The notes beneath the pieces are model-generated. The model was not told the DNA's origin. It was given only the letters and a program-made list of their open reading frames with translations, and did no database searches. From positions 62,001-126,000 of the forward strand of contig MU619296.1 in NCBI GenBank assembly GCA_025201805.1: a stretch of DNA of 64,000 nucleotides, in the 5' to 3' direction. Positions 1,008 through 9,333 of the stretch are shown here, piece after piece. Position 1 is the stretch's first letter, and every line of letters begins with the position of its first letter. The position numbers were made by a program, and so were the translations under genes. This stretch comes from Parasitella parasitica NRRL 2501 (Eukaryota; Fungi; Mucoromycota).

Positions 1008-2185
1008 TAATAATCGAACCAAAAAGAATGAAGAGAAAAAAGAAAGAGTAAAAAACGAGGGAATCCTTGTAATCTGTATTTATGCTTCAAAAGGAGGGGG
1101 GGGGGGGAGTTATGAAAAAATTCTTTAATTGTTCAAATGCCAAATTTGGTGATTGACACGACATTGCTTCTATTGTTGTTTTATTGGATTTGCTTCCTGA
1201 GCGTTATACTGGTGCCAGGTTGAACGAATAGCTTTGCTAATCTACTCTGAAAAAAGTGCGTATGTATGGTGGTTTCAATGGGTGGAAATTTTGAGCAAGA
1301 GCCCATTACTAACAGAGTTTCATGCAAGTGTGCATTCTCAATTGAACCCACTGACTTTGCCAATGCAAAAGAAGTTTTCTTTTAGGACGACTTTAGGCAA
1401 TTAGGAGAACCTTTAAATAAAAAAAGGAATTTTTAATTATTCGTATAACGAGTAATATCGTCCACTATGATCGTCTTTATCGTCAGAATGATCTTCCAAA
1501 TGACTGTCTTGCTTTTTAGGATCAGGCACATTCATGTTCAAGGGTTGCGCGAAAAGACCAGATCGCAAACACACTCCTTCCTTTCATTGTTATCGACTTC
1601 TAAATGTGGTTTCTAGAGATTATTAGTAGCTTGAAATTAAACTATCTTCTGAACTGGAGGATTCCAAACAGCTAAATTTAGCTGCAGAGCGAGCTCACAT
1701 TGTTAGACCCCTTTTTGTCAGCACTACCAAAGAGGCTCTTGAAGGGTGCACATTGCTTCAATGCTTTTTAGGATTATTACATCACCTAGCCAGAGCACGC
1801 CGGCCCAAATAACTGCAGATTGAACAGACCTTGCGGCTTGCAAACTTGATCGTGTTCGCGATATGTATCCACCATAAAATCAAATCACCAGATAAATTAA
1901 AATGAGACTCAGGAATGAAATAACTGACTCTCTTTTTTTTTCTTTGAAAAAAAAAATCAAACTCTAGTAAGCGTATAGGTTTTTACTTTCTTTTATTTAT
2001 TATCATCATTGATAAAACGAAAAGAGGAAATCATAAACCCTTATTTTTTCTATATATAAAAAGGAGAGGATACAAAAAAGACCAAGAACAAGGTATAAGA
2101 ACGAACGAGACAAGTCTATAATTTTATTCATTTTATAAACATTAGAGACTTTCTTTATTCCTACATTTACATAACATTAGAGTTC

Positions 2186-2665
2186 ATGGATAACTGGGCT
2201 TTGCGGGAAAACAACGATTCTCCTGTTGGAGTAAATGGTTTTGTGGACAATATGCCGTTACTATGGAAAATGGGGTTCGAGCCTCCTCTCATGCCAGCTA
2301 ATGAAAACGATACTTCGCAATCATTCAATGACTTTAATCAGTCAACGTCGAATTCAGATTTACCTGACGATGATGACCTAGTCGATAAGTTGTTTCGTGA
2401 AAGCATGCAAGGTAAATCCAAATAGGAAAATTATCTTCTGATAAATCCTAATACTGGTAACAGATATGCACCAACATCAAGCTATGTCAAGCAACGTGGA
2501 AATCAAGCAACCTGATAATCCATTGAACATGCTTTTATCATCACCACCTCCACAGCCTATAAACGCGCCAATTATCAATCGAAAACGTTCACGATCGCCT
2601 GTCCTTACTGAACAGTCCAACAGCTATGTTTCTATAGAACAATCAAATGCACCACCTCCATCACT

Positions 2666-2696
<31 letters not shown>

Positions 2697-2911
2697 CAAC
2701 CACTTCAAAACGACTCCACGAGGCAATTACCGCAACCATCATTTACGCAATCTTCGTTATCTCAACAGCAGCAGATTCAACAACAGCAATCCCAATTATT
2801 GCTACAGCAGCAATTACAAGCTCGGCAACCGTTGCCTCGGCCGCCTATGATGCAACAAAATTTACCTCGTGGATTGCCTACGCAACCTGTACCGCCGCAA
2901 CAGCAAAAGCC

Positions 2912-2965
<54 letters not shown>

Positions 2966-5900
2966 TCACCCAGCACCACAGTACTATCCACAAGGACCTG
3001 TACCGCAGCAGCCCTTTTTCCCTCATCATCAAACCACTTTTATGCCAATGGCACCCATCCAGCAAAATGCACCTGTCCGTCCATCTACGCCACCCATTCT
3101 TGCCAATTTCCAAAACAAATCATTTCAGCATCTCAACATGTCACCACACCACCGAAAATTAGACATCCTGCCAGGACAACCTTATCAACTTGTAAACAAT
3201 ACATATCCTAACAATGGCATGGCAGAGCCCACGATAGTCAATGCTTCGCCGTCGCCCCCAGCTCCAGCCCCAGCCCCAGCTCCTCCTCCTCCTTCTGCTC
3301 CTGTCAGAAGCGCAACCACCATTGTATTAAAAACACAGCCAGCGCAAAAGACGGCAATTCCTCTTAGACCTCAATTGAAAGTGCACTTTGTTCGACATGG
3401 CTTAGACTCTACCATTTTTGACGATCCAACAGATCCCATGAAACCCGACCTGGATATTTTGTCTTTGCGGAAATTGACTGTGGCGACGTTATGCACGCTG
3501 AACGTCAACATTGCCCTAGAGGAATTGCCAGAGGTGGACATTGAGGAGCCGTTGTCCACCGACTCACATCAAGTGCTGCCAGCAGCTGCTATGCAGGTGA
3601 TTACCAAGATGGTGCTAGGGACTTCCGGTGATAAAGAGGTTGCGCAGACACTTGCATCTCAAATTTCAAACGGGGATTTGGTCGCCTTCCAGCGCCTAAT
3701 TGTAGCTGGTCTGCGAAGCAAGAATATCGTTATTCATACGGTGCTGAATGAACAGACGTCAGTGAATAATGGCACAAGGAGATCGGCAGCACCAGATGAC
3801 GACATCATTGATCTGACTCATGTCAAGTATGAACCACCTCACAACGTAACACGCTTATTTTTGAGGCTGTATCGATACATACTCAACATGCTGCTGTCGA
3901 CACCCGATTGCTGGCCTTTTATCCAGCCTGTGCCAGAAACCGCATTTTTGTACCATCGAGAAATCAAGAACCCAATGGATCTGTACACGGTGGAAGAGAA
4001 TATATGGCGTGGAAAGTATACCAAGTTTGCCAGATTCGAGAATGATATGCAGCGCATTTGGAAAAATGCAAGACTATTCCATCGCAGTTCAGGCACGATC
4101 CCGAGACATGCAGAAAATTTAGAGTCTTTATTCACAAAGATTGTGATGGATATCAAGAGACAGAATTCGTAAGTGTTACTTGCACCTTCTGATTAATAGT
4201 CGAGAAAGTGTGTGTATGTGTGTATATGTATGCTAACGGTACATCATGGGCTATTTTACTAGTAAAAACAAGCCAGCGTCCGGTCCTCATGATTTCCAGT
4301 TTGACCCAACCAACACTCTGCCAGAGGAATCGGATTTTTCATACCCCCCCATAGAGCAAGTGTTTTCAGAGACAAGCACCGTGTATACCATCTCTGCACT
4401 CTCGCCGCTAGAACCCAAAGCTCGGAAGGCAGGCTTGAAAGATGAAAATTCGCTCTACTTGCAACTCAATGGCCCATTTTTCCAAGCCGTGGAGCGCATG
4501 AAGTCTGACTTGGACGGCAACCACCGACAAGTGCCTCGGTTTTACATTGCAAAAAATCGAACACTGCTGCGTCAAGTTCGTTCTCAAGGCGTGTTGGCTA
4601 TATTTTACAATACGAAAACAACCCGAGTCCGCCACAGTAAAAACATTCGCATCGATACAGACATGATCCTGGCTTACCCGGCTAGCGAATTTTACGACCT
4701 GGATCAAATCAACGAGTGCACAGTTGACTTTTCGCCAAAAGGCTGGATTCATCTACGACCGCTGCGCGTAGTCAACCGTATTTCGTTTGAGGCTAACGAC
4801 TACATTGACCGGGACTACTTTAGACGCATGTTTGCTACTGCAAAAATGGCAACAGACGACAAGAATGGACACCACAATCCAGAGACCAAGCTGTTGCTCA
4901 AGAAGATTGTTCGACAAATCCTAGGACTACCCGAGAGGCAAGAAGTCGAGAAGCAACAAGTGCCTGTCAAATCAAAGCCAATCATCAAACTGCACACTTT
5001 TGTAAAGGGCGACGACCACCGACTCGTCATCCAACAACGCATGTTGAAAACCAAAGAAGACGAAGCGATGGAGGCAGACGAAGGGTCGGACGATGAAAAG
5101 CCTTCGCCTAAATCGACCGACGTCAAGTCTCAACACAACCCTAAATCGAGTATACCCACAATGTCAAATGAAGAGCGTTTAGGGACGAGAGAAGTCAATC
5201 ACGAGGTCTGGAGAAAGCTGTTTGACGGTAGGTTGTACAGTTGCATATTGCTTAAACGCCCATCTTTGACACGCTATTGTATTTACCGTAGTATGTGCAA
5301 GCAAAGGAATTTTTATTCGAAATATAACGTCGCACGGAAATATCAATTGGAACTCGCCTGATTCCGAGGGATTTTTTAAGCGTGTTTATTTCTTTGATGG
5401 TATCGTGGTCCAAGCGTTTAGACAGATGACCATGTATCAACGCATCACTGAGGTTGCATGTTTAATGTAAGGTTGTTTGGACGCTCTCCTTGCGCCGATG
5501 CTAACTTTTTTTTTTTTTTTTTGTTCCTTTTTCTGATGCATAGGAAACTGAGAAATTTACCACACATGGCGCAAATGAGAGAAATTTTGTTTAACGATAA
5601 TGGCGACGTTGCGGGCCTATCGATGGAAAAGTAAGGTTATTGTCGTCAAGATGCGACATGTGTTGCTAACATCACTATTTGGAACGTAGATATCAGACTA
5701 CCCTGAAACGGTATGCTCATGTACACTCGCACCATCGCTTATCCGCATACCAGAAATACGACGTTATCTACCAGATGTTGTTGTGCATGAAGACAATCCA
5801 CAAGGCAGGCCTCGCCCATCGAGATTTGTCCGAAGTGAACATCATGCTCAACATATTAGAGGGGCAATTCCTGGAGGATGGCAGCGAAAAAGTGTACCTG

Positions 5901-6661
5901 TACCTGATCGATTTCGGCAAGGCAGTGTTCTGCGAATCTTCTGATGTCCGCGATTGGTTTGTCGATGTACCTAGAGCTGATTGGGAATACGACGGGGACG
6001 TTGTCCCCGAGACTAAAGAAGAACTAGATGCATGGTGCGATTCCCTCCCTTGGGTAAAGGGCAAACCAGACCACGGCTACCGTATGTATAGGTAAAGTTC
6101 GGTCGATAATTGATGCGAGTAGAATACGCTTGCTGACTGCAATTGCGATTTAGATCCATCCAAACTTTGCCAAAGACGAGATCTGATAATCAGGTTCTTC
6201 CTTGGTTGATCCACCCACAAGCTGAAGACATTTACTCGATTGGAGTCATGATATGGAAAGTATTTACCGACACGGAACCATGGCGTGGAATTTTGGAGAC
6301 AGACTTGCAGGGTTTGCGCTACGTAGCCGAAGACGATTACCGAATCCAAAGAGCGTTAGAAGGAGAAGTCCACGGCGAACTGAGCCGCCAATTGCTGCTG
6401 AAATGTCTAAAGACTAGGCCTCAAGATCGTGAAAACGCAGCCGACATTTTGAATTGGATTAGCCAAGACAATGTGCGAGAGGGTTTAATTGGCGAATGGA
6501 AAATGTACTCCTCAGACACACGAGGCACTAGAAGAGCCAAAAGCTTTTATGGGTTTGAAGACACAGGAGTAGAAGAAGAAGAGAAGAAGAAGCCTCGAAG
6601 AAAAGCAACTACTACCGGCTCAAAACAACGAGGCCGTCCCAAAAACCCCAAGGATACCTAA
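2186..6661 (+). CDS. PolyQ/Pro-rich, bromodomain, atypical protein kinase and AT-hook protein, ~1355 aa (exons 2186-2411, 2464-4168, 4263-5227, 5292-5466, 5544-5630, 5690-6091, 6154-6661)
   Basis: All six GT-AG introns keep frame (4068 nt total). Bromodomain motifs WPFIQPV, PMDL and IWKNARLF. Kinase motifs HRDLSEVN, DFG and DIYSIG. C-terminal KQRGRPK. Confidence 0.85.
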
Positions 6662-7295
6662 TGTTTAGACTATCTCTGCATTTTATTTTATTTTTTTCGT
6701 ATATTCCATGAAAGCATCAAATAGCCTCCTCCCTCTGTTTTAAAATATTTAACACCCAAATGTACATAAAATGCCATTTTTTTTTCCTCCCCCCCCCCCA
6801 AGCAAGAGACATGCTGTGAATAGTATGTCTGGCAAAATTACTTGATGGCTATATAGCTGAGATGTCACTTGTATAAAAACGGTTTATGCTTGTGCGATGC
6901 TAAATGTGTATGTTTAAAATTACGTATACACAGCAATGTGTTTACTGCTTTGGGCAACCGGTATCCTTGAGCAAGACATGTGCAATCAGAAGGCAATCCT
7001 TTATCTTGATTAAACGCAAATTTCGGTAAATCTCTTCTGCCTGGTTTAGAAGATGATGGTCGGAGCGGGGTAACTTTGTGCCTTGTTCATCGTGTGGCTC
7101 TTTCAATCCTGGGTATCTACTATGTTATCATATAGACGACAGTTTGCAGTTTGATGATTAATACAAGGAGTAAAATTTATTTCAAGAATTTTCCAGGCCC
7201 TGCCCATGTAATAAAATAAATAAAGAATATGGTTGTTTTTCAAGGTTTTGAATAGAGGGAATAATAGGTTATATAAAGTACATTTTTTAATCATT

Positions 7296-9333
7296 TTAGC
7301 AAGCTTGTTCTGTATCAATCAAGTTGTCCATAGTAAGATCTATTATAACGAGTCGAAAAAAAAAAAAAAAAAATTAGAACTTTAATCAAGATGTGCTAGG
7401 TGCTAAAAAAAAAATGTTACCATAGTCTTGATGAGATGTTAGTGAATCTGCTTTGGTAGCGTCCACCAATAATGTGTCCCATGGGTCGCAGGTCTCGGGG
7501 AGCTTTTTGTGGTCAGACGATGATTGATAAGGGTGGTGGCGTTGTGGTTTATGTTGATGGCTATGATGATGGTGAGATTTGGATGATTTCTTTGCTGATG
7601 TTTGGGGTTTCGAAAATGATGTAAAAGAATAACCGTTTGTGAGACGGACGGGTTCAAAGGAAGAAACCGGGTCATCGTCAACAACAGTGGCAGGTGGCGA
7701 ACTGGGAGCCTGCAAGGGCGAAGAGTCTGTATTATAGGAGCAATCTGACGATAAAGACGAAGCATAGGATATATTCTGTTCATTTGCACCAGTGCTGTGT
7801 GATGCTGCATTTGCACGATTTTGCTGTGCAATCTTCCAAAAATCAATGCCCAGCAACGCAGAAATGTCAGTGTGATTCAGGTTTTGCTGATGAACTTGCT
7901 CTAGCAGCGGTTGGATGCGGTTATTGCTTTCTGCGGCTCTTTTCAGCTCTTGCTCTTGTTGTTTTTGCTGCTGCTTGAAATCAAGCTCACTGAGGCCCTG
8001 CAGTCTTCTCCAATGATTTGTCGTGCGGCGAAGATCGTAATCGATAGTTAAAAACCAGTACTTTCCAAAGAATTCAGGAGGTAGCTGCCAGTTTGCAGCA
8101 ATGGCAGGATCGCCTCCATGGAAGACAGAGTGGCCCAGCAAACAACGGAAACAGTCGTCCAGGTCGAATTGATCTCTAAACAGTATCATTCTATCACGCA
8201 TGTGAGGCGTCGGAATCAAGTCGATACGAGGGTCGTGGGGGATTGTCAACTACCATAACGAGAAAGAAAAAGAAAATGTTGAAATTCATTAGATAAGATT
8301 TTTCCCCACGTTTTTCTATATTTGTATATTTTACCTGCAAGATGGTGGGCTGAATCGCAAACGGTATCGAATCCATGCGGACACAAGCGGATTGCAATCG
8401 AAGACGAAGACGGAGTGTTTGAATAGCAGCAAGATTTGACGTTATTGGTTCTTCTGTCAACATGACAGGATGAGGAGCGGATGGCTGTTGTTGTTGCTGA
8501 TGATGAGGATGAGGGTGAGGATGGGGATGAGGATGAGGATGAGGATGGCCAAGCAGCTCGGAGTCTGATTCAACAGAACCAGGCGAAAGTGGAGGGATGC
8601 TTGCGTCTTCGTCTTGAGATTCAAGAGGGTGCACAAGATCCTCAGTGGGAAAATCAGAGTCGTACATGGATTCTGGAGGGCAAGTGGCTGATTCTTCCTG
8701 ACGGGGAACTGCGACAGGTACTGCTGTCTTGGAAACGATTGGCTGCTGAAGGTGGGGAGAAGAACGATCTGGCACAGAATGGATACCTTCTTTGGTAATC
8801 ACAATTGAACCTGTGGAGAGATATCGATCACGCTGCTTCATTGTGTGCTTGTAGCCGAAAAGTTTGGAGGGGATTGGCAGCTTGTTGTTGGCGTTCACGC
8901 TGATATATGTCGAGATGGATTCTGGGATGGATTGGGCGAGTACAGACAGAGCTTGTTCGTTGATGTACGGGCCGTGCTGAGGAATCACCAAGTTGTGTTG
9001 AAAGCAGACGAGCTGTAGTGTGAGGACGATGCCCTTCAAATACCAATTTTCTGAGCGCATAATTTCTTGATCAGCTTTCAATTGCTCGTTTTCTGCGTGC
9101 AGTTTGTCTCTTTGCTCTCTGATCTGCTTGATGGCTATCTCCAGCTCTCGCATGTGGCGCTCCTTACGTTCGCGGAATGCTCTTTGAGCTGCTCTGTTCT
9201 GTGCCTTTCGAAGTGCTGGAGATGCAGGATTAGGCTTGCGCCCTGGCTTTTTTCTGACTTTCATAGGCTGGCTTGGTGATGAAGTGTCCTGGTCCATTGA
9301 GACACTTTCAGTATCCGATAAATCTTGCTTCAT
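7296..9333 (-). CDS. Yap/AP-1-like bZIP transcription factor with C-terminal DUF3425-like region (exons 9333-8335, 8249-7421, 7339-7296)
   Basis: KKPGRKP...RKAQNRAAQRAFRERKERHMRELE followed by a leucine zipper. IPHDPRIDLIP..MRDRMI...GDP....NWQLPPEFFGKYWFL matches the fungal bZIP-associated domain. Canonical splice sites. Confidence 0.85.

Follow-up and report, generated by a model that had tools for sequence, protein, structure and literature searches.

A candidate chromatin-tethered kinase of Parasitella parasitica joining a bromodomain, a probable YTH/EVE-like barrel and a protein-kinase fold

A seven-exon gene with bromodomain and kinase exons

The DNA analyzed here, referred to as the window, is a stretch of 64,000 nucleotides (nt) from contig MU619296.1 of the fungus Parasitella parasitica NRRL 2501. 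Located at positions 2186-6661 of the window, on the plus strand, is a gene of seven exons with a coding sequence of 4068 nt (1355 codons). The predicted 1355-amino acid (aa) protein joins a glutamine/proline-rich (Q/P-rich) N-terminus, a bromodomain, a family-specific middle domain, a kinase fold and a basic tail with an AT-hook. With moderate confidence, we read it as a nuclear multidomain protein that acts as a chromatin-tethered kinase. All six introns are GT..AG introns of 52-94 nt that keep the frame, and the reading frame stays open throughout each exon. A sequence-only reading of this DNA had proposed seven exons spliced in frame, and this proposal was borne out, with the junctions 4168/4263 and 5227/5292 matched exactly; the Q/P-rich N-terminus, the bromodomain (about 3880-4150), the kinase fold and the tail were likewise found where that reading had placed them. 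The exons, listed below, were searched one by one (Pfam, BLAST, HMMER), and the full-length orthologs P0002 and P0044 were used as proxies for the joined product.

2186..2411, plus strand: exon 1, start codon (ATG at 2186) and a short conserved N-terminal motif; donor GT at 2412
2464..4168, plus strand: exon 2, Q/P-rich disordered region, conserved pre-bromodomain region and bromodomain; a single open frame, colinear with orthologs
2913..2963, plus strand: run of 17 Gln inside the Q/P-rich region (about 2640-3330)
4263..5227, plus strand: exon 3, encoding the family-specific middle domain and then an acidic linker; 321 codons, frame open from acceptor to donor
5292..5466, plus strand: exon 4, kinase N-lobe, placed from its translation, the family alignment and the secondary structure of the model
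5544..5630, plus strand: exon 5, kinase beta4-beta5, 96.6% identical to Mucor orthologs
5690..6091, plus strand: exon 6, catalytic loop, DFG and activation-segment insert (Pfam Pkinase, E 5.8e-8)
6154..6661, plus strand: exon 7, kinase C-lobe (DIYSIG at 6227-6244), basic tail, AT-hook and stop codon at 6659-6661 (Pkinase, E 1.7e-4)

All seven exons are covered by the Mucor fragilis (1357 aa) and M. lusitanicus (1390 aa) proteins, which align over their entire length, and by the protein of Pilobolus umbonatus (1164 aa), which aligns over residues 1-1162, its gaps confined to the Q/P-rich part of exon 2. The breaks in the alignments with the Mucor and Pilobolus orthologs all coincide with predicted exon junctions. 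Exon 1 is 88-97% identical to the first 75-77 residues of Mucor and Parasitella orthologs and 45% identical to the Pilobolus sequence. Conservation is highest in the kinase exons, which share 93-98% identity with Mucor, compared to 70% for exon 2. Because annotated orthologs align end to end with every exon, the predicted exon structure and its set of elements are far beyond chance. Another public P. parasitica protein, P0052 (CEP07076.1, 1306 aa), skips exon 5 (beta4-beta5), which is likely an annotation error. Its identity to the window is 83-100% per exon, and the two assemblies under the same species name thus differ noticeably.

A paralog lies in the same genome on the minus strand of contig C127 (27000-36999; open reading frames (ORFs) 8024-8416, 5377-7758 and 3272-5410). 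Its bromodomain, middle-domain and kinase ORFs are consecutive on one strand, the last two overlap, and the bromodomain is at the very N-terminus. The middle domains of the paralog and the window gene share 33% identity and their kinases 43%, and the paralog is colinear with proteins of Thamnidium, Helicostylum, Benjaminiella and Pilobolus (P0081) that form a separate Mucorales clade. It is extremely improbable that two or three adjacent genes, encoding a bromodomain protein, an unknown protein and a kinase, were wrongly merged into one by annotation. The ATG found at 4246, shortly before exon 3, and the fragmentary state of some database models would fit such an artefact, but the gaps between the domains are GT..AG introns of 94 and 64 nt, which leave no room for a terminator and a promoter. 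The same domain order also recurs in the C127 paralog despite its divergence, with middle-domain and kinase ORFs that overlap, and in three subphyla. A two-gene reading was rejected on the basis of the short introns, the end-to-end ortholog alignments and the colinear paralog. The bromodomain, middle-domain and kinase exons are, at the sequence level, a single gene. Separate bromodomain and kinase transcripts, which the sequence-only reading had named as the outcome contrary to its proposal, are not supported by the predicted structure, since orthologs align over all seven exons.

Domains of the predicted protein

The bromodomain and the region that precedes it occupy the following positions.

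3366..3746, plus strand: conserved pre-bromodomain region of about 125 aa, in the ortholog clade of Mucorales only
3879..4150, plus strand: bromodomain, with the WPF shelf at 3909-3920, PMDL at 3972-3983 and NARLFH at 4065-4082

Over residues 472-545 of ORF 2466-4169 (nt 3879-4100) the bromodomain scored 61.4 bits (E 8.2e-17) with Pfam PF00439, whose curated cut-off is 21.7, and the ZA-loop landmarks C-W-P-F, P-V-P, Y-H and P-M-D-L are present and aligned across the family. Bromodomains read acetyl-lysine, and their usual motif is N-x-x-x-Y-N, the Asn of which hydrogen-bonds the acetyl-lysine. The motif here is N-A-R-L-F-H, with His at the anchoring position. His was found in 41 of 42 Mucorales members, in 2/2 from Umbelopsis and in 8/8 from Glomeromycotina, and Asn in 59/59 from Mortierellomycotina. 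In human atypical bromodomains the anchoring position holds Tyr, Thr or Asp, and His is not known there. Since the anchor His is old and conserved, the bromodomain is under selection. The acetyl-lysine reader that had been proposed for this locus is therefore upheld in its profile match and ZA-loop landmarks but not in its anchoring Asn. The features of the BET family were not found, as the protein has a single bromodomain and no ET match was obtained in any exon or ortholog. The pre-bromodomain region is 72% identical to that of Pilobolus and 51-60% identical to those of Phycomyces, Gongronella, Apophysomyces and Dichotomocladium; no counterpart was found in Umbelopsis or in the paralog clade, and no Pfam family was matched. 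The presence of Asn in some members of the family and His in others, at the residue that anchors acetyl-lysine, provides a natural comparison for bromodomain biochemistry.

The middle domain lies within exon 3.

4375..4930, plus strand: PUA-like barrel, model residues about 38-222, from the AlphaFold2 (AF2) model
4381-4398, plus strand: motif VYTISA
4534-4569, plus strand: motif PRFYIAKNRTLL
4735-4755, plus strand: motif PKGWIHL
4807-4833, plus strand: motif DRDYFRRMF
5056..5097, plus strand: acidic stretch in the linker from middle domain to kinase

No Pfam match was obtained in exon 3, nor in 40 family members at E<=10. When exon 3 was scanned with HMMER against 1.84 billion representatives, only 33 proteins were returned, and every named one was from Mucorales. 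A profile of the middle domain retrieved only fragments of the same family from 5.8 billion proteins and one irrelevant match (E 0.18) from PDB sequences, and feature matches in the ESM Atlas were bacterial hypothetical proteins, with recognition below threshold. Within the collected family, BLAST extended the middle domain to Umbelopsis, Jimgerdemannia and Podila at about 23% identity; the three-part architecture is therefore ancient.

An AF2 model of the middle domain, generated from a 40-sequence alignment (A1), had a predicted local distance difference test score (pLDDT) of 84.5 and a predicted template modeling score (pTM) of 0.80. In a Foldseek search of the PDB no match fell below E 1e-3, and the top rows were nearly all YTH (YTHDC1, Mmi1, YTHDF2), EVE (PH1033, THYN1) or McrB N-domain structures. 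An all-against-all structural search of 48,161 chains was led by PH1033, the Toxoplasma CPSF4-YTH, Mmi1, YTHDC1 and THYN1 with 5-methylcytosine (5mC) DNA, at Z 6.7-5.2. AtCPSF30-YTH, YTHDC2, the VcaM4I endonuclease and McrB-N with m5C DNA were in the same top group, and the next rows were mostly other PUA-like folds (Lon-N, ASCH and ATP sulfurylase N-terminal domains). After structural rescoring of the Foldseek list, 142 chains had Z>=5, and the best 50 of the 142 were all YTH or EVE. Mmi1 was the best match (Z 7.2, 117/134 residues aligned, root mean square deviation (rmsd) 3.4); among EVE-fold proteins, the archaeal PH1033 (1wmm, 2hd9) gave Z 6.7-6.8 with 120/143 aligned and THYN1 gave Z 6.3. 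An EVE cluster of the ESM Atlas was matched with a template modeling (TM) score of 0.59, normalized by target. A Z below 8 can mean a common arrangement, and the values of 6.7-7.2 obtained here are middling.

These matches suggest that the middle domain is a probable PUA-like barrel of the YTH/EVE type. YTH and EVE domains are readers of N6-methyladenosine (m6A) in RNA or of 5mC, 5-hydroxymethylcytosine (5hmC) or N6-methyladenine (6mA) in DNA, and like the middle domain as modeled they consist of a barrel with flanking helices. Nearly whole YTH and EVE domains superpose with it over 113-127 residues (Z 6.5-7.2, rmsd 3.4-4.4). Unlike them, the middle domain has an extra helical insert (model residues about 51-81) and no sequence relation to them. 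Its most conserved feature is R-F-Y-I-A-K-N-R-T-L-L, in which one Arg is invariant and Tyr, Lys, Asn and a further Arg are nearly so, and this motif would suit contacts with a phosphate backbone. The middle domain, as modeled, possibly adds a third reader module to the protein. The sequence-only reading had described a domain of about 320 aa as unassigned; the lack of a Pfam match holds, and at the fold level the domain can now be placed near YTH/EVE-like PUA barrels. Six-frame searches of the 32.8-Mb genome with PF04146 and PF01878 gave no match, although the YTH search was also blank in control genomes and so says little. The lack of a canonical YTH protein, if real, would be unusual for a fungus.

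The kinase domain spans exons 4 to 7, and its landmarks are as follows.

5366-5389, plus strand: Gly-loop E-G-F-F-K-R-V-Y, Lys codon at 5378-5380
5405-5422, plus strand: beta3 motif V-V-Q-A-F-R, Arg codon at 5420-5422
5450-5452, plus strand: alphaC Glu
5817-5840, plus strand: catalytic loop HRDLSEVN
5910-5918, plus strand: DFG
6066-6080, plus strand: PDHGY, the end of a long activation-segment insert

Exon 6 alone matched PF00069 with 32.9 bits against a cut-off of 31.7, and full orthologs matched with 54.5 bits. The best PDB sequence match to the kinase domain was at E 3e-4, and Pkinase_fungal (FunK1) was matched at only E 0.018. A kinase model was generated from a second alignment (A2) with the Mucor velutinosus ortholog (P0044) as its first sequence, and this AF2 model had a pLDDT of 92.9 and a pTM of 0.92. 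More than 500 PDB kinase structures matched it at E<=1e-3, and RET, CRAF, FGFR2, CK2, EGFR, IRAK4 and CDK11 were matched about equally (E about 1e-10, TM 0.5-0.7). Assignment to a known kinase group was rejected because these fold matches mix TK, TKL, CMGC and CAMK at equal scores. The kinase domain, as modeled, is an orphan branch of the eukaryotic protein kinase (ePK) fold.

The family alignment shows no variation in HRDLSEVN, DFG, the alphaC Glu or the Gly-loop G-x-F-K, in which Lys occupies the third Gly position. DFG and the P+1 region are separated by a conserved insert of about 75 residues. The Gly-loop reads S-E-G-F-F-K, with one Gly rather than three, and Ser stands in place of the catalytic-loop Lys (HRDLKxxN). 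The beta3 Lys is replaced by Arg in 45 of 55 Mucorales members (Lys in 6, Gln in 4), in 2/2 from Umbelopsis and in 1/1 from Jimgerdemannia (Endogonales), and Lys is present in 61/61 from Mortierellomycotina and 7/7 from Glomeromycotina. A change of the beta3 Lys to Arg usually abolishes phosphotransfer, and this state is found in mammalian KSR. The canonical-fold kinase that had been proposed is thus recovered in its ePK fold, HRD, Asn, DFG and alphaC Glu, and departs from canon in its beta3 Arg and its degenerate, Lys-bearing Gly-loop.

The distance from the Gly-loop Lys to the beta3 residue is 14-17 residues, as in canonical kinases. WNK kinases likewise carry Lys at the third Gly position of the Gly-loop (G-x-F-K-x-V-Y) and lack the beta3 Lys, as do Mucoromycotina members here, a likeness drawn from alignment only. 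They differ in that the beta3 residue is Cys in WNK and Arg here, and in that the Gly-loop Lys of this family also occurs with a normal beta3 Lys in two subphyla. No WNK was among the top PDB sequence or Foldseek matches of the kinase domain. In Mortierellomycotina and Glomeromycotina the Gly-loop Lys is present alongside the beta3 Lys; it is therefore older than the loss of the latter and did not arise as its replacement. The same beta3 Lys-to-Arg change occurs in KSR in an otherwise complete kinase core, but KSR differs in being an unrelated family of other architecture and cellular context, and CRAF was just one of many fold matches here. The family, with either Lys or Arg at beta3 and a WNK-like Gly-loop Lys in both cases, is a natural comparison for kinase biochemistry.

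The protein ends in a tail in which the kinase is followed by an acidic run, a basic Lys/Arg stretch and the AT-hook core.

6584-6604, plus strand: basic stretch KKKPRRK, resembling a nuclear localization signal
6629-6640, plus strand: AT-hook core RGRP, in the context K-Q-R-G-R-P-K-N-P-K

This tail pattern was found in Rhizopus, Mucor, Pilaira, Blakeslea, Choanephora, Phycomyces, Spinellus, Radiomyces, Apophysomyces, Umbelopsis (with two hooks) and Jimgerdemannia, and the AT-hook tail is degenerate or lost in Pilobolus, Gongronella and Absidia. At the corresponding place in the tail, a G-R-P core is kept by most Mucorales orthologs, by Umbelopsis and by Jimgerdemannia. The terminal AT-hook and basic stretch described earlier are thus present and conserved in most orthologs.

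Distribution and naming of the family

More than 100 public proteins carry both PF00439 and PF00069, and they come from Mucoromycotina, Mortierellomycotina and Glomeromycotina. The family occurs in nearly all sampled Mucorales genera, in Umbelopsis, in Jimgerdemannia (Endogonales), in dozens of Mortierellomycotina and, among Glomeromycotina, in Ambispora, Geosiphon, Paraglomus, Gigaspora, Entrophospora and Funneliformis. One Basidiobolus protein, with a weak bromodomain match, is also in the family set. The word-seeded searches with length windows on which this taxonomic range rests returned no member in Dikarya, in chytrids or in other eukaryotes. The bromodomain-kinase fusion had been suggested to be lineage-specific, and by these searches it is conserved and restricted to Mucoromycota sensu lato and the one Basidiobolus match.

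All members are named hypothetical or were misnamed by automatic pipelines. Those of Mortierellomycotina include 'Receptor-interacting serine/threonine-protein kinase 1', 'SIK kinase 3' and 'Testis-specific serine/threonine-protein kinase 4', and several from Mucorales are named 'Histone acetyltransferase kat2b'. These automatic names are unsupported by the predicted domain content. No paper on the family was found in the literature on bromodomain-kinase proteins in Mucoromycota or in fungal kinome surveys. An earlier statement that no characterized fungal protein is known with a canonical-fold kinase fused to a bromodomain agrees with this result, and the survey of the bromodomain plus Pkinase architecture by taxon likewise gave more than 100 proteins in three subphyla, none of them characterized. 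On these predictions, the proteins make up an uncharacterized family that spans Mucoromycota in the broad sense, plus one Basidiobolus match, and that is present in databases yet undescribed.

A third kinase of the family, P0085 (943 aa), is encoded in the same genome on the plus strand of contig C3 (312000-321999, at about 4354-7522). It matched neither the bromodomain nor the middle domain, has HRDLSPFN as its catalytic loop and carries Gln at beta3. The gene lies just downstream of one for a ubiquitin C-terminal hydrolase (ORFs 2138-4205 of the contig C3 locus).

Proposed chromatin tethering and alternative readings

Taken as a chromatin-tethered kinase, the protein would be imported into the nucleus through its KKKPRRK stretch and held on chromatin by several weak contacts, a form of multivalent docking. 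The bromodomain would contact acylated histone tails, the AT-hook, a motif that binds AT-rich minor grooves, would contact such grooves, and the YTH/EVE-like barrel would contact nucleic acid. The C-terminal kinase may then phosphorylate nearby chromatin or transcription proteins, and its invariant Gly-loop Lys, as in WNK, may take over the contact with ATP phosphate from the beta3 position. Targeting to chromatin is suggested because the bromodomain scores 61.4 bits and retains WPF and PMDL, the AT-hook and basic tail are conserved, and the model of the middle domain, which includes the conserved Arg, Lys, Asn and Arg of R-F-Y-I-A-K-N-R, has modified-nucleic-acid readers (YTH, EVE and McrB-N types) as its top hits in three structure collections. 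Kinase function is suggested because the model matches kinases at E about 1e-10, the family shows no change in HRDLSEVN, DFG, the alphaC Glu or the Gly-loop Lys, and the kinase exons are the best conserved. Acetyl-lysine reading, phosphotransfer and targeting to AT-rich loci are what we infer from these elements. The protein had been called a reader-writer; both modules are present, yet this idea is only partly supported, because reader and writer are each non-canonical.

Several observations weigh against a chromatin-tethered kinase: the His at the acetyl-lysine anchor, the beta3 Arg and the catalytic-loop Ser, the single AT-hook, since one such hook binds DNA weakly, and a middle domain that resembles YTH/EVE at the fold level only and has no sequence-level link to YTH (PF04146), EVE (PF01878) or ASCH. 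It is possible, though unlikely, that in Mucoromycotina the kinase domain lacks phosphotransfer and is instead, in the manner of KSR, a nucleotide-binding or docking module of a chromatin-bound pseudokinase scaffold. The beta3 Arg of most Mucorales and of all Umbelopsis and Endogonales members, compared to Lys in all 68 from Mortierellomycotina and Glomeromycotina, would fit a scaffold, as would the loss of two Gly-loop Gly residues, the Ser for the catalytic-loop Lys and the distance even from the best match among solved kinase sequences. However, every clade retains the HRD Asp, the Mg-binding Asn, DFG and the alphaC Glu without exception, no other part of the protein is conserved as well, and six Mucorales members have kept the beta3 Lys. 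The invariant Gly-loop Lys, at the position of the WNK catalytic Lys, could also compensate. Another alternative concerns the ligand of the barrel, which cannot be told from fold similarity. In this alternative, which we regard as very unlikely, the YTH-like barrel would have RNA as its ligand, whether methylated or unmethylated, and the protein would act co-transcriptionally on polymerase or RNA-processing factors and not at AT-rich DNA. Most of the top structural matches are RNA-binding YTH domains (Mmi1, YTHDC1, YTHDF2, CPSF30/CPSF4), and Mmi1 binds unmethylated RNA, but DNA-binding relatives score equally (PH1033, THYN1 with 5mC DNA, McrB-N, VcaM4I), and the conserved AT-hook points to DNA. 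A precedent on the side of RNA-directed action is BRD4, a bromodomain protein and atypical kinase that phosphorylates the C-terminal domain of RNA polymerase II (PMC8591364).

The barrel of the proposed chromatin-tethered kinase might also read N6-methyladenine, either as symmetric 6mA at ApT in DNA or as m6A in nascent RNA. Such a mark would be joined with histone acylation and AT-rich DNA at the 5' ends of active genes and answered by phosphorylation, a suggestion that we offer tentatively and consider quite unlikely. Early-diverging fungi keep the AMT1/MTA1c 6mA system. The modest fold match of the barrel counts against a 6mA reader, as does the finding, by the word-seeded searches, of no member in chytrids or Zoopagomycota, which are also 6mA-rich, except for one Basidiobolus match. 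Orthologs have also been kept in Mucor lusitanicus, a species with almost no symmetric 6mA (PMC13297926). A precedent is Tetrahymena IBD2, a bromodomain protein that recruits the 6mA methyltransferase AMT7 and so links histone acetylation to adenine methylation in a 6mA-rich eukaryote (PMC12361904). IBD2 differs in its architecture, with no kinase and no PUA-like domain, and the link of the present family to 6mA is by hypothesis only. According to a 2026 review no fungal 6mA reader is known (PMC13297926), and the finding of 6mA readers was called key in a 2025 study (PMC12695648). If the suggestion were true, fungi would gain their first identified 6mA reader, in lineages that kept AMT1/MTA1c. 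The middle domain, in its model shaped like modified-base readers and found only in 6mA-rich early-diverging fungi, is a concrete candidate for such a reader.

The family extends the known modular fusions of chromatin readers to enzymes. Bromodomain proteins with reported kinase activity are so far known as atypical kinases only, namely BRD4 and TAF1, whose kinase activities come without the ePK fold. As in BRD4 and TAF1, an acetyl-lysine reader and a phosphorylating activity would be combined in one chromatin protein. Unlike them, the present protein has a true ePK fold, as modeled, fused to a single bromodomain where they have two, lacks an ET domain and carries His for the anchoring Asn. 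The bromodomain-kinase fusion is conserved over three fungal subphyla in which no member has been studied, and orthologs are present in Mucor lusitanicus and Phycomyces, where genetics is possible.

A convergent neighbor on the minus strand, at 7386-9333 of the window, matches bZIP_1 (E 6e-8) and, over a segment, DUF3425 (E 9e-7). The stop codons of this neighbor and of the bromodomain-kinase gene are about 725 nt apart, and the former bounds the 3' end of the bromodomain-kinase gene.

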